In this document: positions 1 through 43,860 of the stretch, piece by piece
Numbering within the stretch: position 1 is the first letter of the stretch
Layout: each line of letters begins with the position of its first letter
Assembly (NCBI GenBank): GCA_051530055.1
Contig: CM121341.1
Coordinates: 16,780,784 to 16,844,783 of the forward strand
Origin: Neoechinorhynchus agilis
Lineage: Eukaryota > Animalia > Acanthocephala
Direction: 5' to 3'
DNA: 64,000 nucleotides
Made by a program: the position numbers and the translations under genes
The notes under the pieces: generated by a model
Databases searched by the model: none
Told to the model about the DNA's origin: nothing
What the model saw: the letters and a program-made list of their open reading frames with translations, nothing else

Positions 1-728
1 ATTTGGTTGAAAATTTCCGTTATATATTTGTGCTGGCTGATACCACGGATTATAGTTCATGGCAAATGTATTAGGTGGGATATTATTATAAGTTTGAGAT
101 CTGAATTGTGGCAGCTGATTGTATCCATTGGGTGGATACAAATTTGGAGCTAATTGCTCCTGGGTACCATGGCTTTCGGTCGAAAACGGGTTGGGGAAGT
201 CTCCAGTTCTTGTCCGTGTAGGTCGCCGTCCTCTTCCCGGTCTACGTCCGTCACGCGCTCCATTCATATTTTCCTGTCCAACCCGAGGTCGCTTTGCTGG
301 ACGTTCCTTTATGTTGTTTGGATCGTACGTCCAATAGGATTCTCTGCAACCTGTGGCGCTTACCACCCTTACAAATTGATCATGGTGTGATAAATTGTGT
401 CTTATCGAGTTCTAAAATTGAGATATTATTGAAGTTTTAAAAAATGAATCATGGCGATGCTCACCTTCATTTGATCGATATCTCTTTTGACGGTCATTGA
501 TGCGAAATATTCAACATTACTAATCATCCAATTGTAGATTTCTTGTAGCGTTAGTCGCTGCTCTGCTGAGGTTGTAATCGCCAGCTGAATAAGTTCAGCA
601 TAAGTGGCGAATCCCCAAGGATTTTGTCGTCTCCCAGGTTTCCTTACAGTCTCAGTGGCCGCCTGTTCATGTGGATTTATTGTCGCTGAGGCATTCTCGT
701 AATTGTTTAATCGATTTAGATTGTTCAT
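1..728 (-). CDS. foxo: FoxO-type forkhead transcription factor, copy 1 (partial; exon 1 728-465, 53-nt intron, exon 2 from 411 running off the window start)
   Basis: Spliced translation RRQNPWGFATYAELIQLAI...LTLQEIYNWM...YF...QMK|NSIRHNLSHHDQFVRV...SYWTYNP. The GT-AG intron (AAG|GTGAGC ... TTTTAG|AAC) falls at the conserved FoxO xWK|NSIRHNL position. Nearly identical to 34622-35349 (offset 34621). Confidence 0.85.
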
Positions 729-1620
729 TGAAGTTGTTTGATCCTTGAAATTTGACGTTGTTACAAAGTTTAAGAATCAACGTGAATAGACGATCTTCAA
801 GTGTTAAGCGCAGCTTATATACTCCTGGATGTTTCTTGAAAACATTGACACCTAATCCAAGTGAAAAATATTGTATTTTTGAGTTCAAGTACACTTATAA
901 TTCGTAGTTAGAATTTTGAAACAGTTCGCCTCAGAATAAGCAGATAAATTTAAAATTACCAGACATTAATTAGTACTCACCGAAGATCGGCGTTTTTTAG
1001 CAATTAATAAATACACACGTTGATCCTCATCAGATTTAAACACTTACACGTCTGAATGTTCTGAAGGACGGGTTGTTCCTCATCGTTTGTGAGTTTATTT
1101 GGTATAAAATTCAATAAATGAGCTGTTCGAAAGTTAAAAAGCTGTTTACTTTAAAATGGGCCTTTTTTTGATCATAGATCAAAACATTTTTGCCTCTGTC
1201 AAATTGATGATCTCGTCAATAAACACTTTGCCTTGAAAGTTGTGATGAAATCAGAAGGAAACTATAATGCTACTTTATATGGGTTTTGGCTACAATCAGT
1301 AGTCTTCAAGAAAACCAAACAATCTGCTAATCATTTTTTTAATTTTTGTTGGCGACCAGCTTAACCGCTTTAAATCAAAAATTAAGCAATTTGAAAATCA
1401 CCAACATGGAACACGGTTTGTTGCTGGAATTTCACTTTGATTAACATACTTAAATTGCACTGTTCTGAAATACTTAGAAACGCCTCTGGTTTGAACGAAG
1501 CTTTTAAACACCCAGGAATGTATAAAACTGTATTTCAATTTCACATATTTCACTTTATTAATTTATAAAGTTTACTTCCAGGTAGACATTTAAAAAATAA
1601 AGTACTATCGCACTATATTT
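729..1620 (-). repeat. Shared FoxO upstream module (duplicated non-coding segment)
   Basis: Direct near-identical copy of ~35350-36250; inverted copies at ~29260-29998, 40310-40518 and 42760-43138. Confidence 0.9.
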
Positions 1621-1699
1621 TCCATCCGCATGATCGATCAGGTTTTTTATTGGCACTTGGACGGGCAGTTGTAGATATGAAGAAAAATCAATATTTTTG

Positions 1700-2030
1700 A
1701 GCATTCGACGTCTTACGGCTTCTTCAGAAATCTACAAAGGCACGTGGAGTTGTGAAGTGTGTTGAAGTAGCGACATCGAAACGGAAAGTTCGTCCCGCTT
1801 GTTGAGCAGTACTGTAGCTTTGCCTAGCTGATGTCCAGAACTCGCCCGCGCATTGTCCGCTAAAACGCTCGTTGCGAGGACAATCGGGACATCATTTCTC
1901 GGTCGTCGTAGCATTTTTCGAACGTGGCTAGTGAATTTTCACTCAGCGAAAATTGCGTTCACTAGCTCTATCGCCAATGATTTCTCCGTTAATGACGATG
2001 AGCAAACCAGCGCTGTCATTATCAGGCGGT
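1700..2030 (-). mobile_element. Penelope-like element fragment (RT thumb region)
   Basis: Reverse-complement copy of part of 39817-40310, which translates ...RTALVCSS...EILNEIFADNGY..., typical of the PLE RT C-terminal region. Confidence 0.7.
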
Positions 2031-2079
2031 CGACTTCCCGAGAAAGCGCACTTTCTAGAGAGAGCTGCTTCCCTTTGCC

Positions 2080-7829: not shown

Positions 7830-8825
7830 ATGTCGTTATTGGTTTTTCGACGATTTCAGTCCGTCCGTTTCTCGTCATCCGTAGCTCCGATTTATAAATG
7901 GAACAAGCCGGGTTCTCCGGGACTCTCCTACTTTGTTCAAAAATCAGGAGGACGTGGATGCTTACCGAAAGTACCGCTTGCACCATCTCGAAATCTTGGT
8001 AAAGCTCTAAATGACTTCGGAAACCTGAGCACTGTTTGCGAGGAGGCCAAATGTCCAAACCGTGCTGAATGCTGGTCTCATGGAACAGCTACAATCATGA
8101 TAATGGGCGATGTATGTACCCGAGCGTGCCGGTTTTGTTCAGTCAAGACCAAAGCTCGTCCACCTCCTCTCGATTCTAACGAACCTCAAAAAGTAGCCGA
8201 AGCCGTGGCTAATTCCAATCTATTTGGCAAGCGAGCACTTCGGTACATTGTCATTACGACTGTCACAAGAGACGATCTTGTGGATCACGGATGTGATCAT
8301 TTCGTTCAATGTGTTAAGGAACTTAAAAAGCGGTGTCCAAACGTGAAAGTGGAATGCCTAACATCGGATTTTGGGGGAAATTTGGATTTGGTGAGGAAGA
8401 TGGCCATTGAAAGTGGTCTTGATGTTTATTCTCATAATGTGGAGACTGTTAGGGAGTTGCAGAGATTGATGAGGGATCGCCGTGCTTCGTTTGATCAATC
8501 ACTAAATGTTCTTAGGACGGCTAAAGAAGCTAAGTCTGATCTACTTACAAAATCGAGCCTTATGCTCGGAGTGGGAGAGACCGATGAGCAAGTAAAGAAC
8601 ACCCTTGTTGCTCTTAGAGGCATTGGAGTGGATAGCATCACATTTGGTCAATACCTTCAACCGACCAAAAATCATCTTAAGGTCAAAGAGTTCATAAGTG
8701 ATGAGAAATTCGAATACTGGAAACTGGAGGCTGAGAAGCTTGGCTTTGTCGGTGTTGCGAGCGGAAAGTTGGTAAGATCGTCTTATAGAGCTGATAAGAT
8801 CCTAGAAGCTGTGAACTTTTCTTAG
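7830..8825 (+). CDS. LIAS: Lipoyl synthase, mitochondrial (radical SAM), intronless
   Basis: [13 protein letters not shown] (CX4CX5C), CTRACRFC (CX3CX2C), [23 protein letters not shown] and C-terminal RSSY motifs. Confidence 0.97.
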
Positions 8826-9222
8826 ATTGAAGGCGAACATTAACGCCGAGATTTTTAATTGAGATTGGTGGCAAAAATTTCTGCTATCAGTTTTCTTAGG
8901 GGATTTCAATGGGGCAGAGATATCATAAATGGGTACCACGTTTTATCTGCCCCAAAGCGAGAATCGGGTATCTTTCGCTCAAAGAATGTACAAAAACATT
9001 GGAAGATTGCGGTAAAAACTAGTCTGTACGCAATGTAAACGCTCGATTCAATGCTTAGCAAATTTAAAATAAGGATCATCTGCGCCTTAAACGGATTTTT
9101 ATCTTACTTGTGGATCGTTAAAAAATGAACAAGAATTTGTGTTTCCTCAAGCGCTATTACTGTTTAAAAACTCATTAACTCAATATCATTGAATAATCTC
9201 CTTTCCTCTTAGTTCTTTAGAT

Positions 9223-11170
9223 ATGTCAATGCTCCTTGTGTTTGGTCCAATATACGCAATATACGTCGCTGTGCTATTCGGACTGCATTTTCGAATCAAC
9301 AATCAAATTTCGGATCCGTACATGGATGAGATATTTCATGTGCCTCAAGCTCAAGCGTACTGCGTTGGAAATTATAGCCACGTAAGAGAATTCCAGTTTA
9401 CGATTGCTCATTAAAGCACACAGTGGGACGGCAACATCACGACTCCGAGCGGTCTTTACTTTTATTCGTCAGCAATTGCATTTATCGAAAAAAGAGTTTT
9501 CAAAGTATGCGATTTAGGATGTAGTTCTTTACGATTCCACAATGTTTTTATTGGAACGATGATTCCTTTGATCATTATCAAAATTATAAAGGTATGTTAC
9601 GAACTTGTAAATCTGCTTAAGTTTATTTAAGGCCGATCATCTATTGGATTTCGTAGATTCTCTAAACATTGCCTTACACCCACCCATGTTTTTCTTTTAT
9701 TTTCTTTACTATACTGATTCACTGTCGATCGCGTTCTCTCTTCTGTCACTGCTGTTCGCGCTTCGTCGACGTCCTTGGGTTTCTGCACTTCTGATTGGAT
9801 ATGCAAGTCTCCAAGTAAGACAAACAAACATTGTATTTGTTCCTCTGATCGGATGGATCACCTTGAGGGAATGTATTCAAGTGAACAGAGAGTTCGCTAG
9901 GTTACCGCTCGGGGTACTGAGTGAAATTTTGGATTGTTTAGAATTTTAGAGCCATCAAAAGGAAAACACTAAACATTTATCTGCCTTCTTTATGGAAACC
10001 TGAGGTCTACTAATATTCTATAATTCATTGGCTACTCACAGAACGGTCGAAACACCTTATAGAAATTGTGATCTTTGATAAAAAAAATGTTTTCAATTGA
10101 ATGTGCTTTAATCGCTCAGTGCCCCGCGTTTACGGACTATGATGCGAAATCCTTCTTTGAGCCTCGATTATCTCAAAAGTCTGTTCACGGTTATGCCAGT
10201 GTTCAGAATATTACAAATACTCAATCCGTTCGCTATTGTAGTCGTCTCTTTTGCTGTTCATTTATGGATGATCGGCAAAGTTGTTCATGGCCACGCGGAG
10301 TATCACAAGCCACGTCTTCATTTGATGCAATTCTTTTACTTCTGTTGCTATTATTCAGCTTTCGAGTTGCCTGATATCATCTCTGGTATCAAGGACTTAA
10401 GCCCAAAACTTATGTTTTATTGCACTTTAGCTGGACCGATCATCATCAGACAGATTATGCAAAGGTTCATTTAAGAGTTTCAATTTTGGATACTGAGATT
10501 TGTTTTACTAGCACTATCAATTTATAAAATTCGTCCACGAAACATCAAATGATTTTAACAGATTGTTTATTTTTCAACGCTAACAAGTATTCGAAGCTTG
10601 ATAGTAGGCACGAAAACTTAACTTAACCCAAACACTGGTTATCACTCAAATAATGATTCTTTTTCCTCGCTGAAGATTTTTGTATACCAAATTTCATGTC
10701 TTCGATTTCCCTTAATGAACCTCGGCAATCAGTATCATTTTTCATTCGAGCATCCATTTCTATTGGCAGATAATCGCCATTACACGTTTTATATTTGGAG
10801 AAGAATTTTAAAACCAGAAAAATGGGCTGTACTTCCGATTTTATACACTGTATCCACAATAAGTTTCTTGAAAAGATTGTTGACGATACATCACAGTGCA
10901 GATCTTGGCTTATTTGTGACTGTTATTGGCCTTCTAATATCGGTGATTGTCGCAATCTGCTTTCATCCCTTATTCGAATTAAGATATTTTATCCACCCGT
11001 TTATTTTTTGCACGTTGCTCATACGAATCAACCGCTCACAAAAACGTTCAATGGCCAAGAGTATTATTCATCTCTTAATGAGTATTGGAACAAATGGCTT
11101 AATCATTTGGATATTCTTATACAAGACTTTCATTTATGCTGATGGAAGCATTGCAAGATTTATGTATTAA
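9223..11170 (+). CDS. ALG10: Alpha-1,2-glucosyltransferase ALG10/DIE2, about 5 exons
   Basis: PYMDEIFHVPQAQAYC, WDGNITTPSGLY, LYYTD, RQTNIV, HPFLLADNRHYTFYIW, ELRYF and terminal RFMY motifs. Introns 9382-9423 (42 nt) and 9592-9631 (40 nt) are clear; the later two are approximate. Confidence 0.92.
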
Positions 11171-11559
11171 ATTGGTTTGATTTTGCGACCAAAACAAAAA
11201 GGCCGTTGAATCGTTGTTTAAGTTTTGCCAATCATTAATAAGTTAGTGAAATCTACAAGGCCTTTATACTAAAGAGTACATTGAGCAATCATTCATTTGC
11301 TACATTAGTTTTATTTCGCTTAGAATCAATGCTTTCGAAATATCTTTATTTCGAACGTTATCCGAATTGGCCAATACGATTTCAACAATACTTTTTACGG
11401 ACAATGAACTGCTTAAAGAATAACTTTTAGATTTTTTAAAATGGTATCATCTAAACTAGCGATTTTTTTCACTTATTCGGGTACCAAGCGACTTAATTAA
11501 GATTTTGTTCGTCGCTCGCAGCCAGCAACATAAAATTCGCCTCCGTTGAACCGGAGGGG

Positions 11560-11850
11560 GAGCGGCAACCGCCGCTGAGGAACGCAAAAATACAAATGCA
11601 GGAACTTGGGTCGAAATCATTATTTTGTTCCCTTTGGCGTCGAGACGCTCGGGTCGTTTAGTACCACGGCGCAGGATCTGGTCAAGCAATTGTCCAAGCG
11701 ATTGAGACGAATCACTGGCGATCCGAGATCAGGAGCATTTCTCCTACAAAACATTAGTCTGGCTGTGCAACGGGGGGAACGCTGCAACCGCCCTTTCGAC
11801 CATTACACCACGACGGCAGCTGAGTGATCCAGAGCGGTGGCATGAATGTT
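11560..11850 (+). mobile_element. CRE-clade element, 3-prime end fragment
   Basis: FVPFGVETLGSF...RRITGDPRSGAFLLQNISLAVQRG, the RLE C-terminal motif. Confidence 0.85.
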
Positions 11851-12387
11851 TGTAAATACTTTTTTGTCCTTGTGAAGTTAGTCAAATCCTCTGCACTTTA
11901 TTCAGATCGACCATGAAATCATTACTTAATTTTCAACATTCTGACCTCATTTTTCAATTCATGAGACATTCTCCATTTCTTTTGTTCGTGTGTGAGTTGC
12001 GGGGCTATATGATCAAAAGAACACTTCTGCCCATTTCTTTTCCTTGACGCATTTAGATTCCTTCTACATTTCTAGACATTTCTAACAAAGGGCATTCGTT
12101 CTTAGCCTTCGCTGTTTACCAGTAATCCTTTTCTCAAACGCCTCCGATTGAAGCGAAAGTGAAGCGATTGATAAAAGAGCGGAGCCAGATGAACCAGAAA
12201 CGAGATATGCTCCGCTATTTCCAAATTGGTCGGCAAATAAGCAAAATAACTCAATATGTCAACGATGAACTCGAAAAGCAAGATGAAAATAAAATTACAG
12301 CGATTTCGAATCTTGTGCTTAAATTCCTGATTGTAGTTTGGCTTTTTCCCGATTTGACGAAATTTATTAAATTATTCAAAGTAAAAG

Positions 12388-12430
12388 GGTCAATATTTCG
12401 ACTCGCTCGTGAGTCTTCTTCAGGATGTCT
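12388..12430 (-). ncRNA. Minimal type I hammerhead ribozyme motif at a PLE 3-prime end
   Basis: Minus strand AGACATC-CTGAAGA-A-GACTC-ACGAGC-GAGTC-GAAA-TA-T-T-GACCC, immediately downstream of the GIY-YIG ORF ending at 12451. Confidence 0.75.
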
Positions 12431-12450
12431 AAAAAGAGTAGGAAAGTTTT

Positions 12451-14303
12451 TCATGTGATTGGAGTACTCATTTTGAGTACATAGTCCGCCTTATTGCCTT
12501 CCATTGTATCATATTGTTCAATAAAAATCGACTCAGCGATAACACGAACGTATCGAATGTCGCTACGGAATAAAACATTGTCAAAGTTGATTGTGTGTAC
12601 CGTTGCATCAACATGATTGACTATCGCTGAGTTCGCATCATTTCTCCTCAGTGCATACCTATGTTCATAGATTCTGCGGCAGAGACTGTTAGTTTGTCCT
12701 ATATAGGATCTGGCACAATATCCACACGGTATGCAATAAACCACACCAGTTGGTGGGTCAGCTCTTGCAGAACCTATGACAGCATTGAGGGATTTTCCTT
12801 TTGTCGTGTATGCCACTGCCTTAATGTTTTTCCCTTATATTTTTTGACAATCTGACTATTCAGACTGTCATTCTAGGTATCACTAATAAATGGGATATTT
12901 ATGTATCGCATTTCTTCGGGCTTTTGACCAACCCTCCTTTTCCATTGACTCAGGCTCTGCATGCAGCGTGAGATGTATTTATAGGGATAGCCTCTCTTCT
13001 TAAAAAGGATTTTTAAGTAATTTATTTCCAACTTCAAATACTCATCCTCCGAGCAATATTTAAACGCCCTTCTAAATAGTGCCGTCATTCTACTTATTTT
13101 GTACTTACTGGGCTGTGCTGATGTCCAAGGTACTGGTTGATTTGGAATGTGAGGTTTCCGAGAAACCTTTGTTCTGAAATATTCATAGCGTTCAACCAGA
13201 ACATCTAAGAATGGGAGGACATGATCTTTTTCCTTGTCAGCACTCCATTGGATTGATGAGTCTTTACTGTTTAGAATGTTACACAGAAAATCTACAGATA
13301 CTGTACTGTCTACCAGGAGAAATGTGTCGTCCACATAGCGAAGCCACAATTTTATGAATGGGAAATCAGGCACGTTGATACTCTCCTAATGACGCAGGTA
13401 GATCTCAGCCAAGACTGGAGCAATCGGACTACCCATTGATACACCATTCACCTGATCAAAATGACTGTCTTCAAATTGAAAATTATTTTGCCCAGTACAG
13501 AATTCCAAAAGCCTTTTCCGGTCTTATCTGGAAAGATTCCAGAATTTATCATTATTCATAGGCAATGGGATAGCCAAATCAATGGCCTTTTTTACTGGAA
13601 TCTTAGTGAATAGAGAGGCTACATCGGCTGAGATCATTTGGTGATCTATTAATTCAGTATGGACCCTAAGGGGCTCAATAAGTTCATGACCAGACGTAAC
13701 CACCTTATCACTGTATGGCATAAGTTCTTTCAAGATATTCGCTATACACCGCGACACCGAAGTCGCATAGGTTGAGTGTGCAGCTATTATAGGTCTTATA
13801 ATTTGACGGGATCTTTGTGTACCTTGGCTAGAAAGTACATTTTGGCGTATGAGCATCAACTGATCTGTGGGCTTTATAAAGAGTTTCACTTATTTTATCT
13901 CGTTTTTTGAGAGAAAGGAGGAACGCGTTAAAGGTATTTTCCCGTTTTTTGTTGGACAATTTGTCAACCTCTTAAATTCTGGTCCTAGAAGTATTTCATT
14001 TGTAAGGGATTTATAATGATTTTCGTTAAGGACACAAAATCCATGACCTCTATCTGTTTTTAGTATTTTTATACCTTTGATATTTTTAAGTAATTCTATC
14101 CCATGCCGCATTCTGGTTGGCATATTCGAGTTGCACTGAAATCGTGAGTTATAATACGACTTTTCAACCCTCCATTTTTCGAGCGATATCGCCGCAATTT
14201 TGTTGATTGCAATCCAACAACCATCGGTGGCATCTCTACCGGCAAGCATTTCCATATTTCTCAACGACTCAAACATTTCGATGGTTGAATGGATGATCAT
14301 CAC
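12451..14303 (-). mobile_element. Penelope-like retroelement, near full length but disrupted (RT plus GIY-YIG)
   Basis: RPIIAA, SADVASLFTKIP, GVSMGSPIAPVLA, WLRYVDDTF and LPFLDVLV RT motifs, then GVVYCIPCGYC..SYIGQT...EH...ES GIY-YIG; split by stops and frameshifts. Confidence 0.93.
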
Positions 14304-14454
14304 GGACCGATGGCTATCCGATTACTTACTAAACATTTTCGATCTCATACGTCGTCTGAACTAAGCAAAATAAAAGTTTAAACGGGTTTTTCAATTATAT
14401 TCTATTTAATGATGTATAATGTTGAAGAGGTTAATGGATGTTTCGTTTAATCAT

Positions 14455-15035
14455 TTACACCACCGCTCTGGATCACTCAGCTGCCGTATTGGTGTAACGG
14501 TCGAAAGGACGAATGCAGCGTTCCCCCATTGCACACCGGCTCGAGTCGAGCGGAAAACCCGGCCGTTGAGGCGACTTCCTTAATTATGCGGTTGACTGCT
14601 GAGTGCTGTGCGTGGCGAGTATTTGAACGCTTGCAGTCAAGGCCGTGAGTTCCCGACCTATTCACTGTCCCACCGCACCGGCATGTATATGAGCCTGAAA
14701 AATCGATGCCCAACCGAAGTCCCACAGCGACGGTGATGGCTTGGTCATCCAGCCTCGTGCCAACAACCGTGATCGGGAAAGCCTTCAAGAAGTCGCTGGA
14801 GTGTGGAGCCGAGACTGCCAGGAGACGAGCTCTTTCGGTGGGAGATGAGCATGAGTTAAGAAGCTGCTGATAATACGCAGTGTGGAGCAAGGCAGTCCAA
14901 CGTTTTTGGGAGTTTGTTTCCGTTGGAACTACCAGTCCGAACACTGACGTCCATTGAGCGTGCGCTTCAATCAGTCCAGCTGGTGGATACGACTCAAATC
15001 GAGTCTGTGGTGGGATGATTCTCAGCACCATGTCT
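14455..15035 (-). mobile_element. CRE-clade element fragment, internally deleted
   Basis: RARLLAVSAPHS...AVGLRLG...CRCG...GTHGLDC (CCHC) joined to a 3-prime end matching 11765-11850. Confidence 0.88.
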
Positions 15036-18389: not shown

Positions 18390-18480
18390 TACAATCACCA
18401 CCGTCCACAAAATTGGAGCTTCTCTCCTTCCTCGGCTTTTGCTATCACGCTAGCAGCATTCCCTCGTTGTACTGCACAAT
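18390..18480 (-). mobile_element. CRE-clade 3-prime tip
   Basis: Encodes AVQRGNAASV and ends in GGACGGTGGTGATTGT. Confidence 0.7.
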
Positions 18481-18609
18481 TAAAGTGTAGAAATGAGAAA
18501 ACATTTTTACATTTGAAATTGATAAATAAAAGTTAAATTCGTCATTGTCTCGTTGGTGAAGTTTAATTTTCAAGTTTATTTCTAAGAAAAGCAGCCAGCA
18601 CTCAAGCGA

Positions 18610-23240: not shown

Positions 23241-23291
23241 CATTGCAAATATGATTTTTTCCTACATCACAGCAATTTAAAGATCTCGAAG

Positions 23292-28535: not shown

Positions 28536-29259
28536 TTGTATAATAAAAAAGAAAACTAGTTTGTCGCCTTTTTATCTTTTCAGAAATGTGAAACAAAGTT
28601 GCCTTGCCTACCAGAGCGAATAAGATAAAAAATTAAGGATTAACACGTTGTTGGGTTACTTAATTTCTTAAATATTGGATTGTGTATTCGTTTTTCGTTG
28701 TTGTTGTCAATTTCATACTTTAGCACTCATCTCAATTCATCACGAGATCACAATTCAATGTAGAAGGTAGAGCTTGTCCGTTAATCAACGGGAAAACAAA
28801 CTCAACAATTAAGACGAATAATTCGCCACTTTTCATCGGCGCAGGAACCATCAGTGCCTTTAAACAGGAACTCTCAAGTCGTTTCCTTTTCAAAAGAGCA
28901 AAACAATCCTAATCCCAATTCATTCCATCCTCTCCAAACCTCCCCCCCTCATTTTTCTATACTATCAACCGAAATGAAAAGAAGGAAGGACCCAACTTCA
29001 CAAGAATAACCACAAATTCTCACCCAACCGAACCCGTGATCCACCCCATAATCAACAATCGCATTCATTTAACCTATCAGAAATCGAGTGTTTATAAGGA
29101 ACCAAAGGTACATTGGACCTATTCTTTTTCGATCTTTCTCCTCTTTCTCTTAACGGATTTGGTAGATTCATATTCCGCATTTCATCAGTACAAGCGAATA
29201 TGAGCGGAACATTCATTTTCGCTGAAAACGATAAAAATGTACTCAAGCACGATGCATGT

Positions 29260-30112
29260 GAAATTGAAAAATAGTTTTATACATTCCTAGGTATCCAAAA
29301 GCTTTGTTCAAACCAGAGGCGTTTCTAAGTATTTCAGAACAGTGCAATTTAAGTGTGTTAATTAAAATGAAATTCTAGCAACAAATCGTGTTCCATGTTG
29401 GTGATTTTCAAATTGCTTAATTTTTGATTTAAAGCGGTTAAGCTGGTCGCCAACAAAAATTAAAAAAAAGATTAGCAGATTGTTTGGTTTTCTTGAAGAC
29501 TACTGATTGTAGCCAAAACCCATATAAAGTAGCATTATAGTTTCCTGATTTCATCACAACTTTCAAGGCGAAGTGTTTATTGACGAGATCATCAATTTAA
29601 CAGAGGCAAAAATATTTTGATCTATGATCAAAAAAAGGCCCATTTTAAAGTAAACAGCTTTTTAACTTTCGAACAGCTCATTTATTGAATTTTATACCAA
29701 ATAAACTCACAAACGATGAGGAACAACCCGTCCTTCAGAACATTCAGATGTGCAAGAGTGTTTAAATCTGATGAGGGTCAACGTGTGTATTTTTAAATTG
29801 CTAAAAAACGCCGATCTTCGGTGAGTACTCCTAATCAATGGCCTGCAATTTTAAATCTATCTGCATATTCTGAGGCGAACTGCTTCAAAATTTTAACTAC
29901 GAGTGATAAGTGTACTTGAACTCAAAAATACAATATTTTTCACTTGGATTAGGTATCAATGTTTTCATGATACATCCAGGAGTATATAAGCTGCTTCAAT
30001 GAACAATCTTAATCGATTAAACAACTTCACGAATTCGGCAGCGACAATAAATCCACATGAACAGGTGGCTAATGAGATTGTAAGGATACCTGGGAGAAGA
30101 CAAAATCTTTGA
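29260..30112 (+). pseudogene. FoxO locus copy 2: upstream module plus truncated exon 1
   Basis: MNNLNRLNNFTNSAATINPHEQVANEIVRIPGRRQNL* from 29999, ending just before the forkhead domain; ~75-bp deletion just upstream of the ATG. Confidence 0.85.
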
Positions 30113-30584
30113 ACCGAGGTTCGAGAAAACGGAACAACTATGTCCGGAACCCCTTGCTTCCTGCAGACCGATGTCATAAAACCATTATTAGAACCTTTTG
30201 TTACAAGATCGCACTTATGTTTGACCAATAAGCAATTTTATTTAATTTCAAAGAATCATGACTGATTAAATCATGGTCGGTTGGTCGCCCTGACCACATT
30301 AATCAATTAAAACACATTTGACGAAACTAAGATTTTTGCCGGTGATGCCAAAATACCATATTCCTTAACGGAAGCCTTTTTCCTTTAAAAATCATCGGGC
30401 TTTTTTTTCATGATCGACGGTGCCCTTATTTCCCACTCTTTACGTTTTGTGTTCAAGGTATTTTGTAAACATTTTCAATTGTAAATTTGAAATGCAAAAT
30501 TCACGATATTAAGTAATTTGCAATGAATCTTCAAGTTTTTTGTGATTTAAATTTACTAAAATTTACAAGTTCCGCGGTTTTCAT

Positions 30585-32520
30585 GTCGCTAGCAGCATTC
30601 CCTCGTTGTACTGCGAGGGAGATGTTCTGTTTAAGGAATGCTGTCGCACGCGGGTCCCTTTTCATCACCATCGACCTCCTTGTTATATCGGATACAAGCT
30701 GAAGTGCGGATTCTCCGAGGGCCCCTAACGTTTCGTTCCCGAAAGGCACTAAATGGAATCTCTCCATCAGCTCTGCGTATTTTGCCGCTTTCCGACGCTC
30801 CGCTGCGGTCGCTACAGCGCTGGGGCCTTTGCTGGCTATATCAGCGAAGTACTTGGCCATGCTGTCGGTGCAGGTTGCATCCTATAAGAGGCACTTCCCT
30901 CGGCTCCAAGAGAAGACTGACAAACCACTTGGTCTCTTATCATCAGACCTGCACAGATTACTCGGCTCCAAGATGTTTGGAATGTTGATGTGGGTCAGGG
31001 CTCCACTCAGGATCGCGTTGATTTCGGTATGTTTATGCGACCACCCGGCTGACCGAATGCAAATGATGGAGCATTTAATCCTTTGGCGTCTACTTGCGAG
31101 CCGCAGCGACATTCGTGTTGGAAGCAGATGGGAGCACCCAATCTCAAAGAGAAAGCTACCCGGAATGTTTCATTGTCCAAAAGAGTCCCCAACTTTTCGG
31201 CCGGGATAGCTACCAGCCAGGCGCCGGACCCTTGCATCGAGCAAGCCATGAGTCGCGCACGTGACCTATCTGCCAGTTTGTGTAGAAGTGATATGTGAAC
31301 ACTGCTTTTGGCACTTCTGGGGTGTTGTGGCTTGTCCTACTTTAGAGGTCCATAAGGAGAGAGCATTATTAAAATGCTCTTCGTTGGACTCCGGATAGAT
31401 CTTAAGGGAGTTCTCTCGACTAGCCGAAATCGAAGAAAGAAGAGGCCGGCAATGCGACGTCCTCCATGAGTCTGGATCCTGAACCTCCGTAGTTGGAGGT
31501 CAACGTCACTTGTTTCCACGAGGAATGGTTGAAATCGATATTGACGATTTGGCTGAGCTTATTCCGAAGAAGATCATCCCGACTCGAAAGATCATCATTG
31601 CACGTGAAGGCGGGTGCAGATCTCAGTCTGCAAAAACTATGGGATGTAGAGGCCGTTTTTAATAAAAAAACGGCTTCGTGAGACTTTAGCTCTGAACGTC
31701 TCTCACACAGCAAACTCAGGGTGGCAAAGATATTTGTTACGTCCTTCGGAACATTCTCCCTGAAAACGCATGAACCCAGGATACTTAAGTCGCAAATATT
31801 GATTCGTTTGATGCCCGGAGCGACACTTTTGAATTGCTTGTGTACCTGCGAGCTTTCTGTTTCGTCCATGTTCAGGAGCAACAATTCACAATTTGAGCTG
31901 TTCAACTCGAAGCCTATCTTGAAGCTGATCTCGATGATACGGTAAAGATCACCCTGAACAGAGAGAGGGCCGCCTCCCAGGGTGCCGTCGTCCAGGTACC
32001 ACGTGTTGAAGTTCGATTTCGGTGAAATGGAGAAGCCTATCGGGCCGAAGGAGTCACCCTGTTGCACTTCCCGTTGGGACCAGATAATGTTTCGATTATA
32101 AATCAGGGGTGAAGGGGCGCCGTAGGCTGTGAAGAAATATTGTAGTCTACGGGATGTGCATTTTAACCTCGTCAAGTAGGACATTCCGTTCCAGAGAACA
32201 GAAAGCATTCTTGAAGTCCGCCTTCAAGACTATGCATCGATCCGTCGACGTTTCAACGAAGTTCCTTAAGGCGTGAACGATTGCTTCGGCTACACAAGGA
32301 GAGCAACAGCCGAGTTGCGCTGGGAGCAGCAGGCAGCCAACAGTCGAAGAAACCCTTTTCGAAACGATTTTGGCCACTAAACGCCTGAGTGTATTGCCAA
32401 CAGCGATGGGACGGGTGCCACGGTTGGCAGAGAATAGAAGCTCAGTAGGAAACGATCCTAGATTGTGGTTAAGCAAGCGATCGAACAACTTTCGCAAGGC
32501 AAGTTTGACTGAGATGCCAC
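30585..32520 (-). mobile_element. CRE-clade non-LTR retrotransposon, degenerate (RT, CCHC, RLE)
   Basis: RPIAVGNTLRRL, KADFKNAF, VQQGD, WYLDDGTLGG, LRLG..C.HECRCG, KRPSG, VPFGNETLG and ISLAVQRGNA across frameshifts. Confidence 0.93.
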
Positions 32521-32734
32521 TCCCAGCTGAAGTGAAGGATACCATATCTATTTTCAAGTTTGTTTTCCTTTCATATTCAATTAAGAGAAAAAGTATGCAA
32601 TGACAATGTTTTAACAAATATAGGTCTATAAAGGTGAATGCAGCAAGAAACTTATTTAAGCAGTGGAAACCAACGGTCTTAAGGTAAACAGGTTGAAGAC
32701 GATATGCATGGAACCGGAAGCGTTGAAGTTAGGT

Positions 32735-33230
32735 GTGGATTTGACGATGAGAAGAACAGTGAAATATCTTGGCAGCGAAGTAAATAGGACAAATTACCTC
32801 GAACCCGAAATAACTGCTCCTATACAAAGCGAGTAGCTCAACTGGAGGAAGATGTCTAGTGTATTATGCGACAAAAGGATCTTACCGAAACTGAAAGGCG
32901 GCTGTTCGAGACGGTGGTGCGACCAGCCATGTCATATGGCGCCGAAATTTGGACGAGCGAGCAAAGCGACCTCAGAAGATTAGAAACGAACGAGATGAGG
33001 AGGGAGCTGTTCGGCACTTGCCGCTGTTCAGAGTTGATCGTCCAAAGAAGGTTATGCCGGCACGATAAAGTTTCGAAGTGCGAAGCATATCACATACTGC
33101 GCAGCACGGAGAGACTGGAAATCGCTGACGAGGAAGGACGAGGAAACGATGGGTGGGTTGCATTAAACAGGATAAATGGCTTGTCGATGGAACCACAACT
33201 TCTCGAAAGAGAGAAAAAATACGTGAGTGA
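32735..33230 (+). mobile_element. RTE-clade LINE fragment (post-RT C-terminus)
   Basis: KYLGSEV...W.KMSSVLCDK.I...LFETVVRPAMSYGAEIW...LETNEMR. Confidence 0.8.
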
Positions 33231-33369
33231 AAAAGAGAAGAACGTGATCAATTTTGATAACACGGCGTTAACAGTTCGAATACACCGATGGATTTATGTT
33301 TGCCAATAATCAACGTGAAAGTTAATTAGTTGTACACAATCGTAGGAACCAGCAGGCTTCATTGTCAAT

Positions 33370-35349
33370 CTATTGCGTACGATTATTTTGATTTCTGCTT
33401 TTAATTATTCCATCCAAGAGTCTCAGGATATCCGTATTCTTTACAAATATACTCGGATTTTCATGCTGCTGGTCAATAAATGAAGAATTTTCGCTCTGCT
33501 GTGTCAACCAGTCGTTATTTAAGGAATCCCGGAATCCATCACGATTATCGGCCTCAAACGAATTCCCTTCTTGTGCTTCTGCTGCACTATCGCCCTCTGA
33601 AATCGCATTCAACTGAATTTGTCGGATATACTCGTCATATTCGGTCGGCTCATTCCACCACTCATAAATCTCAGCTTGAGCGTTGACGAACATACCTTCA
33701 CCTTCCATAGGGTTACTTTTTATTGTCCTGGAACTTTGCTTGGCTGGGGGCGACAACAAATCTTCTTGAATTCCAGCATCTAACGCCCTTTTATGCGAAT
33801 GCGAGACTTCCTCTTTCAAAGGTGGTTCTTTTGAATTTCTATTACGCAATTGTGCGCTAGCAGCAGTTTGATCGTAGAAACTAATTGAGCCCTGTTCGTT
33901 AATATTTTCGAGCATTTGCCCAGCGTGAACCATTCGCGAGTCGTTTTTTTTTGTCACATGATTTTCTCCCGAACTCCTTGGTAGAATACTCAGCCCCTGG
34001 TTCTTTTAGTTCGCTAATGGCGCCCTCGGATGGTTCCATTTTCTGTTTCTTCGCATCGGCAATTATTTGATCAATGAAAGCTCCAACTTCATCTGGATTA
34101 GAACTAGTGTTTGGCGTTGTATTCATCTTTCGAATAGTGCATTGGATTCTAGAAAATGGATTCGTACGGACTATCCCAGAAACCTGATGTCCGGTTGGAA
34201 CACTTTCTCCGAGTATCATTTGATTTGAGTTTGTTTGTCCAATTGTTTCGTTATTAATATTTACAAATCCTTCTTGGCTCGAGCTGTTAACATGACCTTG
34301 AAAAGTATTTCCGACTGGATTCAATACCGTAGCCGTGGATTGGTTTGCAGAATTTGGATCCGCCGGCATAGTCATAGGACCTTGCAATCCCATTGGACCA
34401 CTTGCTCCGATACCCATTTGTTGTAGGCCGAAATTTGTAATATAATTTCCATTGTATGTGTGTACCGTTGGAGTATTCAGATTTGCTTGAAGGTAAGTAT
34501 TATTTATTCCAATTCCATTATTCATTTGTTGATTTGTGCCATCATAACCCCATTGTGTGTTCATGGTATTTTGAGTTATAATATTGTTTTGGTGCTGGAA
34601 TTCAAATTGTTGTCCAAGAGCATTTGGTTGAAAATTTCCGTTATATATTTGTGCTGGCTGATACCACGGATTATAGTTCATGGCAAATGTATTAGGTGGG
34701 ATATTATTATAAGTTTGAGATCTGAATTGTGGCAGCTGATTGTATCCATTGGGTGGATACAAATTTGGAGCTAATTGCTCCTGGGTACCATGGCTTTCGG
34801 TCGTAAACGGTTTGGGGAAGTCTCCGGTTCTTGTCCGTGTAGGTCGCCGTCCTCTTCCCGGTCTACGTCCGTCACGCGCTCCATTAATATTTTCCTGTCC
34901 AACCCGAGGTCGCTTTGCTGGACGTTCCTTTATGTTGTTTGGATTGTACGTCCAATAGGATGCTCTGCAACCTGTGGCGCTTACCACCCTTACAAATTGA
35001 TCATGGTGTGATAAATTGTGTCTTATCGAGTTCTAAAATTGAGATATTATTGAAGTTTTAAAAAATGAATCATGGCGATGCTCACCTTCATTTGATCGAT
35101 ATCTCTTTTGACGGTCATTGATGCGAAATATTCAACATTACTAATCATCCAATTGTAGATTTCTTGTAGCGTTAGTCGCTGCTCTGCTGAGGTTGTAATC
35201 GCCAGCTGAATAAGTTCAGCATAAGTGGCGAATCCCCAAGGATTTTGTCGTCTCCCAGGTTTCCTTACAGTCTCAGTGGCCGCCTGTTCATGTGGATTTA
35301 TTGTCGCTGAGGCATTCTCGTAATTGTTTAATCGATTTAGATTGTTCAT
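33370..35349 (-). CDS. foxo: FoxO-type forkhead gene, copy 3 (most complete): exon 1 35349-35086, intron 53 nt, exon 2 from 35032, with a +1 frameshift in an A9 run at 33944-33952
   Basis: Complete forkhead domain after splicing, followed by a Q/N-rich region. The downstream 33957-33370 frame is fused in-frame to the forkhead region in copy 4. About 641 aa if the run is A8. Confidence 0.88.
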
Positions 35350-36250
35350 TGAAGTTGTTTGATCCTTGAAATTTGACGTTGTTACAAAGTTTAAGAATCA
35401 ACGTGAATAGACGATCTTCAAGTGTTAAGCGCAGCTTATATACTCCTGGATGTTTCTTGAAAACATTGACACCTAATCCAAGTGAAAAATATTGTATTTT
35501 TGAGTTCAAGTACACTTATAATTCGTAGTTAGAATTTTGAAACAGTTCGCCTCAGAATAAGCAGATAAATTTAAAATTACCAGACATTAATTGGTACTCA
35601 CCGAAGATCGGCGTTTTTTAGCAATTAATAAATACACACGTTGATCCTCATCAGATTTAAACACTTACACGTCTGAATGTTCTGAAGGACGGGTTGTTCC
35701 TCATCGTTTGTGAGTTTATTTGGTATAAAATTCAATAAATGAGCTGTTCGAAAGTTAAAAAGCTGTTTACTTTAAAATGGGCCTTTTTTTGATCACAGAT
35801 CAAAACATTTTTGCCTCTGTCAAATTGATGATCTCGTCAATAAACACTCTGCCTTGAAAGTTGTGATGAAATCAGAAGGAAACTATAATGCTACTTTATA
35901 TGGGTTTTGGCTACAATCAGTAGTCTTCAAGAAAACCAAACAATCTGCTAATCATTTTTTTAATTTTTGTTGGCGACCAGCTTAACCGCTTTAAATCAAA
36001 AATTAAGCAATTTGAAAATCACCAACATGGAACACGGTTTGTTGCTGGAATTTCACTTTGATTAACATACTTAAATTGCACTGTTCTGAAATACTTAGAA
36101 ACGCCTCTGGTTTGAATAAAGCTTTTGGATACCTAGGAATGTATAAAACTATTTTTCAATTTCACATATTTCGCTTTATTAACTTATAAAGTTCACTTCC
36201 AGATAGACATTTGAAACATAAAGCATTATCGCATCAATTCGAAAAATCTT
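35350..36250 (-). repeat. FoxO upstream module, copy 3
   Basis: Direct near-identity to 729-1620. Confidence 0.9.
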
Positions 36251-39499: not shown

Positions 39500-40310
39500 A
39501 ACAATAACGTTTTTAAAGTTAAAGCAGCAATTTGATACAAGCAACCTAAAGGCGAAAAAATTTCTTAGATACGAGAGTCAAAGAGATTGTTTTTATCTGT
39601 TGAAAATTAAGTGGAAACGCAACCCAGATCCCTTCTCAAATTGGTCCTCTTCTGAATTGAATTATGTCCTAGACTCTATCAATCAACATCCATTGAATAT
39701 GAATTTGTCAGCTATATTTGTGTTTCAAAGTTAATGATGTCACTGATTTCAGTTGGTATCACAAACCGTGGCGTAAAAAGGATAATTAAGCATCGAGATT
39801 TCCATCAGCCTGGGTAATGAAACAGGTAATTTATGCTGAGATGTTAAGGACAGCGCTGGTTTGCTCATCGTCATTAACGGAGAAACGATTGGCGATAGAG
39901 ATATTGAACGAAATTTTTGCAGATAATGGATACAAACGTAACGAGATCATGCGGTTCCAGCAGCGGTGTAATTCAAGAGAGGAGAAACGGAAAGATGACC
40001 TTTCACGGAATCTATATGGAGGAAAATCGATTCTCAAGGTTCCATATATCAGTGAAAATTCACTAGCCACGTTCGAAAAATGCTGCGACGACCGAGAAAT
40101 AATGTCCCGATTGTCCGCGCAACGAGCGTTTTCGCGGACAATGCGCGGGCGAGTTCTGGACATCAGCTAGGCAAAGCTACAGTACTGTTCAACAGGCGGG
40201 ACGAACTTTCCGTTTCGGTGTCGCTAGTTCAACACATTTCACAGCTCGACGTGCCTTTGCAGATTTCTGAAGAAGCCGTAAGACGTCGAATGCTCAAAAA
40301 TATAAAAAAC
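39500..40310 (+). mobile_element. Degenerate Penelope-like element fragment (RT C-half and thumb)
   Basis: KFLRY..., FSWYHKP, KQVIYAEMLRTALVCSS, IFADNGY and LKVPYISE motifs. Confidence 0.75.
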
Positions 40311-40518
40311 TGATCGATCATGCGGCTGGAAAATCAAGTTGCATTGCCCAAGATTTTTCGAATTGATGCGATAATGCTTTATGTTTCAAATGTCTACCTG
40401 GAAGTGAACTTTATAAGTTAATAAAGTTAAATATGTGAAATTGAAATATAGTTTTAAACATTCGTAGGAATCCAAAAACTTTGTTCAAACCAGAGACGTT
40501 TCTAAATATTTAAGAACA
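40310..40518 (+). repeat. Distal part of the FoxO upstream module, copy 4
   Basis: Reverse complement of ~36090-36300. Confidence 0.85.
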
Positions 40519-40629: not shown

Positions 40630-40790
40630 TGACCTCGCCTCATCAGTAAACACGATCTAACGTCGTAAACACTTGCAAACAATGACTGATGAGGCGAGGT
40701 CACCTTGCGAGATATTTCAAAAAATCAAATGTGCTATTACCGGGTTTATTATCACCAAAATAATACCTGGACTAACCCGTAGGATTTTTT
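40630..40790 (+). repeat. Hammerhead-family repeat nested in the CRE element, with a 19-bp inverted repeat
   Basis: GTGACCTCGCCTCATCAGT ... ACTGATGAGGCGAGGTCAC; core CTGATGA-G-GCGAGG-TCA-CCTTGC-GAGA (GAAA mutated). Confidence 0.65.
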
Positions 40791-42159
40791 TATCGAATTC
40801 TCTATATTTTCGTAACTTCCTCCCTTCCGCTGCACTGGCTGCACCTCCAGGGATTTCGAGAGAGTACGGAATGTTGCTTACTGCGAGGGTGTCCACGCAC
40901 GTGGTGTCCCAGAGAAGGCATTTGCCCTCCCGCCGCGGAAAGACCGAAATTCTTCAGGGATGAACGGGTTCCAAGATGTTGGGAAGTTCGCCGTTCTCAA
41001 CGCCCGAGAAATTACGCCATTGATCTCAGAATGGCGTGAGAACCTTCCTCCAGACTTTCGGTAAACGAGATCGTGTCGCCCGAAAGCATCAACCAAAGAC
41101 CAACATCGACAGCGATGAGGCGTGCATATCGGGAGACCAAGTCTTAAGGGCACTGTGATCCTCGTTACCTCATCAGTGAGAAGAGTTCCCACAGATGCTA
41201 GAGGAACAGTCTCCAACCACACCCCCGATTCTCGTGTCGAAACTGCCAACAATCTAGCTCGGACGACCGCATCGCGAGAACCGGAAAGTAGAGAGCTGTG
41301 AGCTCTTGCGACGAGAGGTCTGTCCCAGACCGACCGTCTGAGGCCATTTACGGGAACGTGGTTAGCGCCTATCTGCTGGCACCATTCTTCAACTGCCACC
41401 TCAAAATCTTGGTCATGACAAAAATTTCCCCTCAGAATTTTCTTTGCTATCGGTTGACTCCCCTCATACGATCCAAGAAAGGCTGGCAAGGCAAGGACTA
41501 CTAGCGCCCGAATGCCCAACCATCCAGATGACACAGACAATGAAGCTTTTCGCCACGCCTCATTTGAGAGTTCGACATTTAAAATACGCTCGAGACAAGC
41601 CCTCACCTTGTCGTCGAGCTTAGCAATCCTTCCTTATGTTTCAAGAATGTTGCTGTGCAGTGCTGAGGCCTTAGCCCATCAAGCCCATGATCCGAACCAT
41701 TTGCAAAAGATGAGATGGCCTTTTTTAACTCTGAAATTTGAGTGGGTGTCCTGTCTTGTACGGTAGGAGGTAGCATTAAAAAACTGCCACTACTGCATGG
41801 ATGTTTTAACCAGTATATTTGTAGTGTCGCGTTGTCTCCTTGTGCAAAACTGTCGGAGGATGACAATAACCGAACAGCCCCCGAGCATCTCCGTAAGCAA
41901 GCTTCGAAGAGACACGTTCAGTCAGGGATCGCTTTGAAAAACGGCAACGAAACCCTTCCTTCGTGCGTCCCTAACGAACCTCGCGAAATTTCATTTCGAA
42001 ATGGTTATATAATAAAAACACGTTTTATTTATGTAAAAAATGCAAGATCTACACACTTGTCAGCATCTATCTTTGCTAAATGGTGTATGGATTACGGATG
42101 TTGAAAGCAAGGGAGGTGGGACTCCTTTTTGAAGGGGTATTGATGCGGGATCGGAGGCT

Positions 42160-42300
42160 TTGTAAAGGAGATGACATATTAGGAGTCTCCTTATTCTCCG
42201 GTTATTAAGGAAAGATTGCGCTTGAGGGAAGAAAGAATTTTGGTAGAGGGTGGTACGAGCGAGGGGGAAGAAAAGGGTTGGGGTTACGGGTGTCAAAGAC
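42160..42300 (-). mobile_element. LINE 3-prime fragment (CR1/L2/Jockey-like) nested in CRE
   Basis: ARTTLYQNSFFPQAQSFLN resembles the RT..Y..SFFP....N C-terminal motif. Confidence 0.5.
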
Positions 42301-43138
42301 ACCTAAGAATCATCACTGGTGCAAAGGACTAAGCGCGAAAATGCGAAGAGCTATTTCCATGGTGGCGTACAGTTCTTTTAGAGACAATCGTTGAGCAATC
42401 CCGTAAATGCTTTGGCGACCTGATATCGTGCGCCATTTGGGATCCGTTTCAGGACGTTCTTGGGCAGAAACCGCACGATATTAGGTAGCCAAATAGAGTC
42501 AGTGGTGATCTGAGAGGTCTTAGGCATAATCAGATCGGTTGATTGTAGTGATAACAAGACCCGCTACAGCGGAGATCCCGGGGACCATGGGCAAACAAAC
42601 CCCCAAATGGGTTAATTTAGAAGAACTTGGGAGCCCGGCAGCGTTGGTCTTCTCAGGTTGAGCGTGATCTTTAAGTTGCGCAATAAAGGTTTTTTTGCGT
42701 CAGTGATTTGAGGAACATAATTTAGGCGTGGTGTCCCGGTAGCGTTAGGCGTTTCCATTTTATGCCAAATAACCTCACAAACGATGAGGAACAACCCGTC
42801 CTTCAGAACGTTCAGGCGTGTAAGTGTTTAAATCTGATGAGGATCAACGTGTGTATTTATTAATTGCTAAAAAACGCTGATCTTCGGTGAGTACTAATCA
42901 GTGTCTGGTAATTTTAAATTTATCTGCGTATTCTGAGGCGAACTGCTGCAAAATTCTAACCACGAGTTATAAGTGTATTTGAACTCAAAAATACAATATT
43001 TTTCACTTGGATTAGGTGTCAATGGTTTCATGAAACATCCAGGAGTATATAAGCTGCGCTTAACACTTGAAGATCGTCTATTCACGTTGATTCTTAAACT
43101 TTGTAACAACGTCAAATTTCAAGAATCAAACAACTTCA

Positions 43139-43860
43139 ATGAACAATCTCAATCGATTAAACAACTTCCAGAATTCGGCACCGACAATAAATCCACATGA
43201 ACAGGCGGCCACTGAGACTGTAAGGAAACCTGGGAGACGACAAAATCCTTGGGGATTCGCCACTTATGCTGAACTTATTCAGCGGGCGATTACAACCTCA
43301 GCAGAGCAGCGACTAATGCTACAAGAAATCTACAATTGGATGATTAATAATTTTGAATATTTCGCATCAATGACCGCGAAAAGAGAAATCGATCAGATGA
43401 AGGTGAGCATCGCCATGATTCATTTTTTAAAACTTCAATAATATCTCAATTTTAGAACTCGATAAGACACAATTTATCACACCATGATCAATTTGTAAGG
43501 GTGGTAAGCGCCACAGGTTGCAGAGCATCCTATTGGACGTACAATCCAAACAACATAAAGGAACGTCCAGCAAAGCGACCTCGGGTTGGACAGGAAAATA
43601 TGAATGCAACGCGTGACGGGCGACAGTCCGCCAACTGTGACAGTCAAAGAAATTCGTTTGAGGCCGATAATCGTGATGGATTCCGGGATTCCTTAAATAA
43701 CGCTTGATTTGCACAGCAGAGCGAAAATTCTTCATTTATTGTCCAGCAGCATGAAAATCCGAGTATATTTGTAAAGAAAACGGATATTCTGGGAGTCTTG
43801 GATGGGATAATTAAAAGCAGGTATCAAAATAATCGTACGCAATAGATTGACAATGACGCT
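43139..43860 (+). pseudogene. FoxO copy 4 with ~1.27-kb internal deletion and premature TGA at 43705-43707
   Basis: Exon 1 43139-43402, intron 43403-43455, intact forkhead domain, then fused in-frame to NSFEADNRDGFRDSLNN; TGG in copy 3 corresponds to TGA here. Confidence 0.85.

Follow-up and report, generated by a model that had tools for sequence, protein, structure and literature searches.

An amplified, lineage-specific family of FoxO-class forkhead genes in the acanthocephalan Neoechinorhynchus agilis

The genome of Neoechinorhynchus agilis, an eoacanthocephalan parasite of fish, carries a family of FoxO-class forkhead genes with at least 12 copies at at least seven sites on two chromosomes, CM121341.1 and CM121343.1. 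Four of the copies, c1 to c4, lie in the 64 kb of DNA analyzed here, referred to below as the window (assembly GCA_051530055.1, CM121341.1, a 19.4-Mb chromosome, positions ~16,780,784-16,844,783). In all probability the window holds part of a lineage-specific, fast-evolving FoxO-class family that was amplified by DNA-level duplication and evolves by birth-and-death. FoxO, as the conserved output of insulin/PI3K-Akt signalling, governs dormancy, stress resistance and lifespan; invertebrates normally have one or two copies.

The repeated unit consists of i) an upstream module of ~750 nt with a TATA box; ii) a 264-nt exon 1; iii) a 53-nt phase-0 intron (GTGAGC...TTTTAG) that follows codon 88 and lies between QMK and NSIRHNL; and iv) an exon 2 of ~550 codons. 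The repeat structure was determined by self-BLAST of the window. Positions 1-1612 match 34622-36233 on the same strand with 98.45% identity over 1612 nt (E = 0), and 245-1110 match 43622-42757 in inverted orientation with 95.7% identity. Two further inverted matches, 810-1546 to 29994-29256 (94.2%) and 616-733 to 30111-29994 (87%), define c2, and 32736-33564 match 44486-43651 (89%). The E-values of these matches are 0 or <1e-30, thus excluding chance. An original prediction made from the sequence had placed four copies at 1-1620, 33370-36250, 42760-43860 and 29260-30112, with the same exon 1, 53-nt intron, exon 2 and upstream module in the first two, in deleted form in the third and truncated within exon 1 in the fourth; the self-BLAST ends fall within ~20 nt of each, and the recurring anatomy was confirmed by self-BLAST and by reading of the splice sites. 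The same prediction took the c1/c3 duplicated block to be 2.9 kb long, which proved too short: the block measures ~5-6 kb and, downstream of the gene, takes in an antisense fragment of a reverse transcriptase. The features of the copies are as follows (L001 is a family locus on the other chromosome; L006 is the left extension).

1..411, minus strand: 5' part of c1 exon 2, starting at NSIRHNL; the gene runs past the left edge of the window
412..464, minus strand: c1 intron, 53 nt, GTGAGC...TTTTAG, phase 0
465..728, minus strand: c1 exon 1, 88 codons, ATG at 728-726, encoding the N-terminus and forkhead helices H1-H2
729..1612, minus strand: c1 upstream module, common to c3
29256..30111, plus strand: c2, a dead fragment, with upstream module at 29256-29994 and ATG at 29999
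30205..33369, minus strand: rest of the c1/c3 block on its downstream side, with 89-96% identity to the c1 downstream region in L006
33370..35032, minus strand: c3 exon 2, full length save for one +1 frameshift
35033..35085, minus strand: c3 intron, 53 nt, identical to the c1 intron
35086..35349, minus strand: c3 exon 1, identical to c1 exon 1
35350..36233, minus strand: c3 upstream module, with 15 c3-specific changes at -884 to -775
39842..40518, plus strand: a fifth remnant with the distal upstream flank only, matching L001 8698-9253, without FoxO sequence
42757..43138, plus strand: c4 upstream module, truncated at -382
43139..43707, plus strand: c4 gene, with exon 1 at 43139-43402, intron at 43403-43455 and exon 2 at 43456-43707
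43708..44486, plus strand: remnant of the 3' end of c4 exon 2 with downstream flank, 89% identical to c3 33564-32736

The full product of c1 (P0023) is an intact open reading frame (ORF) of 641 aa. Its upstream module carries TATATAAG at 814-821, and the distal ~150 nt of the module (1461-1612) are an older repeat that is also present at 39983-40518. Copy c3 is collinear with the intact paralogues except for the frameshift, an A9 run at 33944-33952 (codon ~450) where all other copies have A8. The additional A may be a true mutation or, in an Oxford Nanopore Technologies (ONT) R9.4/Illumina hybrid assembly from pooled worms, an error. The public gene model for c3, P0001, bridges the frameshift with an artificial intron (window 33911-33960) that is seen in no other copy; hence the 607-aa protein of the annotation probably does not exist. 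For annotators this is a warning, as the public model masks a frameshift with an invented intron. Within the downstream part of the block lie the reverse-transcriptase fragments, which occupy 31420-32617(-), and an ORF of retroelement-like sequence, 32866-33309(+).

The other two copies had been described as older and damaged, and the damage was borne out. Copy c2 has lost 76 nt between the TATA box and position -5, and its coding part is cut at codon 37, after which the sequence is unrelated. Copy c4 has lost ~1.3 kb in frame (gene positions ~484 to ~1775) and has a premature stop, leaving a 171-aa ORF that consists of the forkhead domain and a 27-aa tail; exon 1 and the intron are intact, and the start codon and both splice sites are kept. 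The tail carries an RQSANC insertion common to the family copies at 14.1 Mb on CM121341.1. c4 is publicly annotated as a gene; if transcribed, its product would be a DNA-binding domain only.

The amplified family belongs to the FoxO class on the combined evidence of sequence searches and a predicted structure. The only Pfam domain in the spliced product is Forkhead (PF00250), at 65.7 bits against a cut-off of 27. A phmmer search of the PDB ranked FOXO4, FOXO1 and FOXO3 first (77-86 bits), followed by FOXM1 (55) and other classes at 50 bits or less (FOXP at most 50; FOXA and FOXL2 ~41). The alignment to FOXO4/FOXO1 covers 110 residues without a gap, and the five-residue loop between helices H2 and H3 must therefore be present. 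This loop occurs in all FoxO-type sequences, and FoxF-type outgroups show a 5-6-residue gap there; the loop sequence of the family is nevertheless divergent, SMTVKRDIDQMK, where vertebrates have KGDSNSSAGWK. The AlphaFold model shows a winged helix with H1-H2-H3 and two strands, with a predicted local distance difference test score above 90 at residues ~35-120 only. In a Foldseek search of the PDB with this model, the top 14 matches were all FOXO1, FOXO3, FOXO4 or Brugia DAF-16, with template modelling (TM) scores of 0.63-0.92; the scores against FOXO/DAF-16 crystal structures were 0.81-0.92. Outside the family, the best database matches are FoxOs of rotifers, molluscs and fish, the nearest being those of bdelloid rotifers, as befits a syndermatan; a 12-residue stretch, AITTSAEQRLTL, is identical between the family and bdelloid FoxO. 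A neighbour-joining (NJ) tree, which included two non-FoxO outgroups only and is not a full class phylogeny, places the family within the FoxO group.

The gene structure agrees with this assignment. In vertebrate FoxO the forkhead domain is interrupted by an intron immediately before NSIRHNL. Two read-through models of bdelloid FoxO, P0018 and P0020, are unspliced, with an insertion exactly between GWK and NSIRHNL, and rotifer FoxO must therefore have an intron at the same position. A phase-0 intron at WK|NSIRHNL also occurs in the N. agilis genes ACOME3_002151 and ACOME3_010026, which represent two other FoxO-type lineages (see below). The base-contacting residues of helix H3, N-x-x-R-H-x-x-S, are kept: NSIRHNLS is invariant in all intact copies, and the broken copy P0003 lacks the NS. 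The FoxO identity and the xWK|NSIRHNL intron proposed in the original prediction are thus upheld by Pfam, the PDB sequence search and Foldseek, and by the match to rotifer FoxO and the other N. agilis lineages. The alternative that the gene belongs to another Fox class, with a superficial likeness to FoxO, is extremely unlikely. Several FoxO-invariant residues are changed and the FOXO KIX-binding and transactivation (TAD) Pfam domains go undetected, as a non-O class would predict, but FoxO ranks first, by ~30 bits, in both sequence and structure searches, the loop insertion and the intron position are those of FoxO, AITTSAEQRLTL is identical to bdelloid FoxO, and NPWGF is common to the family and ACOME3_002151.

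As compared with FOXO1/3/4/6, DAF-16 and bdelloid FoxO, the family protein is strongly modified. Its forkhead is 44-48% identical to FOXO1/4 in a structure-based alignment and shares with FoxO/DAF-16 the NSIRHNLS helix, the five-residue insertion, the phase-0 K|NSIRHNL intron and a basic stretch after the domain. It differs in that the Trp of GWKNS is Met and KSSWW is RASYW. The N-terminus is short, ~30 residues, and lacks the first Akt/14-3-3 site; neither an N-terminal Akt site nor an RRRAxS site was found in the family. The single site with the Akt consensus (RxRxxS/T), RGR[RG]PT at 148-153, is present in all copies in place of RRRAxS. The same strict motif scan finds three sites in a mollusc FoxO and none in one bdelloid FoxO. 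The FOXO KIX-binding and TAD families (PF16675, PF16676) gave no match at E<=1 in the family, nor in the bdelloid FoxO P0010. A C-terminal TDILRLL is similar, by eye, to the xxILRxxL / IIRSEL core found in the FoxO of rotifers and vertebrates.

The protein has a tail of ~480 residues (160-642), N/Q-rich and then acidic, which is predicted to be disordered save for three weak helices. In an exhaustive HMMER search of 1.84 billion representative proteins, residues 160-642 had relatives inside the family only. Outside the family the relatives covered the forkhead region only, with at most 47% identity and 103 bits. A homologue of the tail outside the species is thus lacking, and this, together with the at least 12 gene copies, sets the family apart from FoxO/DAF-16.

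Other FoxO-type genes of N. agilis were found by screening the exhaustive HMMER hits for shared motifs and then examining their clusters. (A search with a 130-aa rotifer FoxO forkhead segment returned only short proteins of at most 230 aa and no N. agilis entry.) ACOME3_002151, a 477-aa protein encoded at 9.09 Mb of CM121341.1 (L008), is a more conventional FoxO: it retains the AWKNSIRHNLSL and KSSWW motifs as well as FNFD at the C-terminus, its intron measures 387 nt, and a single copy was seen. ACOME3_010026 and ACOME3_010055 are two copies of a divergent 339-aa form on CM121343.1 (L009, 6.39 Mb). ACOME3_002151 shares NPWGF with the amplified family and ACOME3_010026/010055 share SYWT.D.NN, and both are without the tail of the amplified family. 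Counting the latter, there are three FoxO lineages in the genome, which has otherwise been reported to be poor in genes. The window family is therefore an additional, lineage-specific paralogue, as originally proposed; the conventional FoxO is also present, and the tail occurs only in this species.

Copies were counted by tblastn and blastn of the loci fetched for paralogous proteins, so that the total is a lower bound. Besides the four window copies, CM121341.1 carries an intact copy at 16.61 Mb (P0024, L007), a truncated copy at 14.30 Mb (P0003) and at least three damaged copies at 14.11 Mb (P0005, P0006, P0147). CM121343.1 carries the intact P0002 at 1.50 Mb and a head-to-head pair at 2.19 Mb (L005), one member of which is the intact P0026 and the other frameshifted. 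The proposal of a local amplification is correct for the window but incomplete, as copies lie also at 14.1, 14.3 and 16.6 Mb and on CM121343.1. ORFs of 641-642 codons are intact in four copies; a fifth is broken by one frameshift only, and truncation, deletion or frameshift has damaged at least seven more. These states bear out the proposed birth-and-death expansion. A copy tree was built from an alignment of the shared 5' region in which the non-homologous flanks of truncated copies were masked. In it the window copies are mutually nearest (c1 to c3, distance 0.019; c4 to c1/c3, 0.044; c2 to c3, 0.058), another young clade unites the CM121343.1 copies with L007, and the copies at 14 Mb are older.

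The intron is kept in all copies that reach it, and the upstream module and flanks are kept in all copies. Such co-duplication of intron, promoter and flanks means segmental duplication at the DNA level rather than retroposition, and on the same grounds a retrogene or processed copy was ruled out. The sequence shared by L001 and L007, which lie on different chromosomes, amounts to 8.1 kb (94.8% identity), and that shared by L001 and L005 to 6.3 kb. The ~5-6 kb shared by c1 and c3 include 1.8 kb downstream with the antisense reverse-transcriptase fragments, and window 36233-30205 matches L006 9110-14258. Upstream, c1 is collinear with L001 for 3 kb, to window position 3713 and then into a 378-bp satellite. 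This satellite occupies 4950-6809, ~3 kb upstream of c1, in 4.9 copies of 99% identity. A partial unit stands at the equivalent place upstream of the other-chromosome paralogue (L001 6678-6755), and the satellite seed therefore belonged to the ancestral duplicated segment. Inverted arrangements are common: c2 and c3 lie tail to tail, c3 and c4 head to head, and L004 is tail to tail, which suggests fold-back or template-switch events in retroelement-rich DNA. The two L005 copies (CM121343.1, ~2.19 Mb) abut head to head at 8254|8255 with asymmetric arms (L001 7709, 8912), a junction characteristic of inverted duplication by fold-back or template switch.

The copies exchange sequence by gene conversion, and mosaics are seen. 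The substitutions between c1 and c3 had been thought to be scattered; they are clustered, at -884 to -775 and at gene positions 1075-1274. There are three differences in the proximal ~740 nt upstream, none in exon 1 and the intron, two in the downstream 330 nt, and ~20 differing sites within gene positions 1075-1274. At 1161-1274, c1 carries 9-10 variants that are otherwise found only in the 14.1-Mb copies, unlike its sister c3. The 15 c3-specific changes at -884 to -775 have the appearance of a conversion tract. A sequence of events can be proposed in which the unit would have been copied as DNA, in segments of 3-8 kb that included dead retroelement pieces, in direct and inverted orientation. 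The copies would have landed nearby, elsewhere on CM121341.1 and on the second chromosome, and would then swap sequence by ectopic gene conversion, while many would decay by truncation, internal deletion or frameshift in a birth-and-death process.

The retroelement pieces raise a different possibility, that the FoxO unit is a passenger of a composite mobile element and was spread by transposition, for example by transduction of the LINE (long interspersed nuclear element) or Penelope type. The same debris does lie beside every copy (the upstream repeat, found alone at 39842-40518, and the downstream antisense reverse-transcriptase fragment), the copies occupy two chromosomes, and several stop at one downstream point, L001 12314. 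A comparison of nine loci for transposon hallmarks (shared termini, terminal repeats) makes this improbable. The upstream ends of the unit vary (L001 6678, 6799, 7709, 8912, 9018, 9109, 9175, 9607 and 9614), and the 12314 end is a one-clade difference, as c1, c3 and L004a run on for 1.5-1.8 kb and c4 for ~270 bp. The inverted repeats of 70-96 nt that surround the unit derive from the coding parts of two separate element copies and are not terminal repeats, and the intron is retained. Neither a poly(A) tail nor a target-site duplication was noticed, although the unit ends were not systematically searched for them. Two specific vehicles were rejected: a DNA transposon with terminal inverted repeats, as the 70-96-nt pair consists of opposed coding fragments of one retroelement family; and LINE 3'-transduction, under which the far end should be constant and truncation variable on the LINE side, as the ends misfit and L001 12314 is a one-clade indel. 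Segmental duplication remains the preferred route.

A related concern is whether c1 and c3 (98.4% identical) are truly two loci. If they were an uncollapsed haplotype or a mis-joined repeat, the window would have three copies. In favour of this, the MaSuRCA assembly combines ONT R9.4 with Illumina reads and derives from ~50 pooled worms (PMC12690905), and exon 1 and the intron are identical between c1 and c3. Such an artefact is nonetheless very improbable. A stretch of 34.6 kb that includes six different single-copy host genes separates the two copies, and they are set in different outer flanks; collinearity with the other-chromosome copy extends for 3 kb upstream of c1 but is not seen upstream of c3. 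The variants that distinguish c1 from c3 fall in clusters and are lineage-informative, the c1 tract being typical of the 14.1-Mb copies. Furthermore, purge_dups was run on the assembly and the window has no N gaps. The intervening block is:

7830..27092: host-gene block separating c1 from c2-c4, with genes for a lipoyl-synthase-like radical-SAM protein, ALG10, an HhH/BAF-like protein, NTF2, an MMR_HSR1 GTPase and Nup84/107

The intact copies were examined for constraint. The dN/dS ratios among them (nonsynonymous to synonymous rates, pairwise Nei-Gojobori) are 0.35-0.6 overall and 0.13-0.37 in the forkhead domain. Exon 1 is less diverged than the flanks, for example 1/264 vs 24/724 between L005a and c1, and in several pairs it is 3-8x less diverged than the upstream module. 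The coding sequences of the four intact copies contain one indel, in frame and 3 nt long; the 3.1 kb of upstream non-coding DNA contain 10-16 indel events per pair. Among random substitutions 4.5% create stops, yet the intact pairs, which differ by 35-65 substitutions, hold none. ORF integrity is a stronger signal of constraint than dN/dS or divergence. These patterns are read as purifying selection that is relaxed but real in some copies, with others decaying freely.

Several observations weigh against a functional, FoxO-class family of this size. FoxO-invariant motifs are replaced (AWGN by PWGF, GWK by QMK, SLH by SHH, KSSWW by RASYW), and function could have been altered or lost with them. 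Branching inside FoxO is weak, 46% bootstrap on ~100 residues in the NJ tree. The copy number comes from a pooled-worm MaSuRCA assembly (ONT R9.4 and Illumina) (PMC12690905). Exon 2 has diverged by 0.034-0.039, much as the flanking non-coding DNA (0.03-0.046), and third codon positions are only mildly enriched in changes; constraint on most of the protein must therefore be weak. Finally, the case that the intact copies are functional is argued from sequence constraint. One supplementary file of the N. agilis genome and transcriptome paper contains zero forkhead, FoxO or locus-tag entries.

In its strongest form this doubt holds that the whole family is decaying junk, with frames that persist merely through the youth of the copies. 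The similar divergence of exon 2 and non-coding DNA, the weak codon-position bias, dN/dS ratios of up to 0.8-1.0 outside the forkhead in some pairs, the many visibly broken copies and the replaced FoxO residues would all fit. This is unlikely all the same: four frames of 641-642 codons have remained stop-free, their only coding indel is in frame beside 10-16 events per pair in adjacent DNA, and the forkhead dN/dS and the exon 1 divergence are low. Working DNA-binding factors are the most likely products of the intact copies: the winged-helix fold is predicted to be kept along with the recognition helix NSIRHNLS. Such factors, if expressed, would be expected to bind FoxO-like sites. The FoxO target site, DBE (DAF-16 family member-binding element), is GTAAACAA. 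They may be regulated unlike canonical FoxO, since the disordered tail is new and the classical Akt sites are unrecognisable save for RxRxxT at 148-153. Within the upstream module a single GTAAACA core was found among candidate FoxO-binding sites, at -421, and autoregulation through FoxO sites was set aside, as this lone core is too weak.

Other repeats occur in the window. A 269-bp tandem array at 48283-51597 has 12.6 copies with 84% matches and is AT-rich (GC ~0.32). A retroelement remnant at 12451-14303(-) and 14477-15031(-) has a GIY-YIG-like motif (VVYCIPCGY...YIGQT), as in Penelope-like elements; its ORFs gave a weak NCBIfam match only (E=0.03) and no Pfam match. A Penelope-like identity for the upstream repeat of the FoxO unit (ORF 39817-40170) was not confirmed: it has no Pfam or NCBIfam match, and BLASTP to the GIY-YIG element of the window gave E=0.21, so that it is described as a retroelement-like repeat only. 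A 423-aa ORF at 62571-63842(-) is a near-complete reverse transcriptase (RVT_1, 110.8 bits) and may be a young non-LTR (long terminal repeat) element. An Rfam scan of the window gave no matches.

Two known systems offer comparisons. Primate FOXD4/FOXD4L genes are segmentally duplicated Fox copies in pericentromeric and subtelomeric DNA. They resemble the N. agilis family in that a Fox gene lies in repeat-rich segmental duplications, with near-identical copies and pseudogenes on several chromosomes; they differ in Fox class and phylum. Fox families generally expand and contract (PMC9539403). Closer in class are the FoxO expansions of flatworms: Stenostomum has four copies and Macrostomum has three (bioRxiv 10.1101/2025.01.09.632129; Pascual-Carreras et al. 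2021, PMC7859237), and a multi-copy FoxO in N. agilis is therefore not unprecedented. The premise that invertebrate FoxO is usually single-copy has exceptions in these flatworms with 3-4 copies (bioRxiv 10.1101/2025.01.09.632129). The flatworm and N. agilis expansions are independent spiralian multiplications of a gene normally present in one or two copies, and in each the paralogues diverge. The N. agilis copies, however, are several-fold more numerous, very young (2-12% divergence), include many pseudogenes and lie in retroelement-rich segmental duplications; the flatworm duplicates are older and predate species splits.

The literature searched does not mention forkhead or FoxO genes for N. 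agilis or for any acanthocephalan genome. The expansion is real and previously undescribed, and the processes behind it, segmental duplication, gene conversion and birth-and-death, are familiar. Acanthocephalans have undergone heavy loss of regulatory genes (PMC12256650; PMC12690905), and a young, dozen-copy FoxO expansion in such a lineage therefore runs counter to the trend. A further reading can be offered only as a speculation with rather low odds: the family would be a working, Akt-uncoupled FoxO subfamily that serves a parasite-specific programme such as cystacanth arrest or sex-specific growth, duplication and conversion would keep the copy number high, and c4-like derivatives would act as dominant-negative competitors at FoxO sites. 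The range of copies, from intact through nearly intact and forkhead-only to dead, provides a natural series for the duplication, regulatory escape and decay of a transcription factor.

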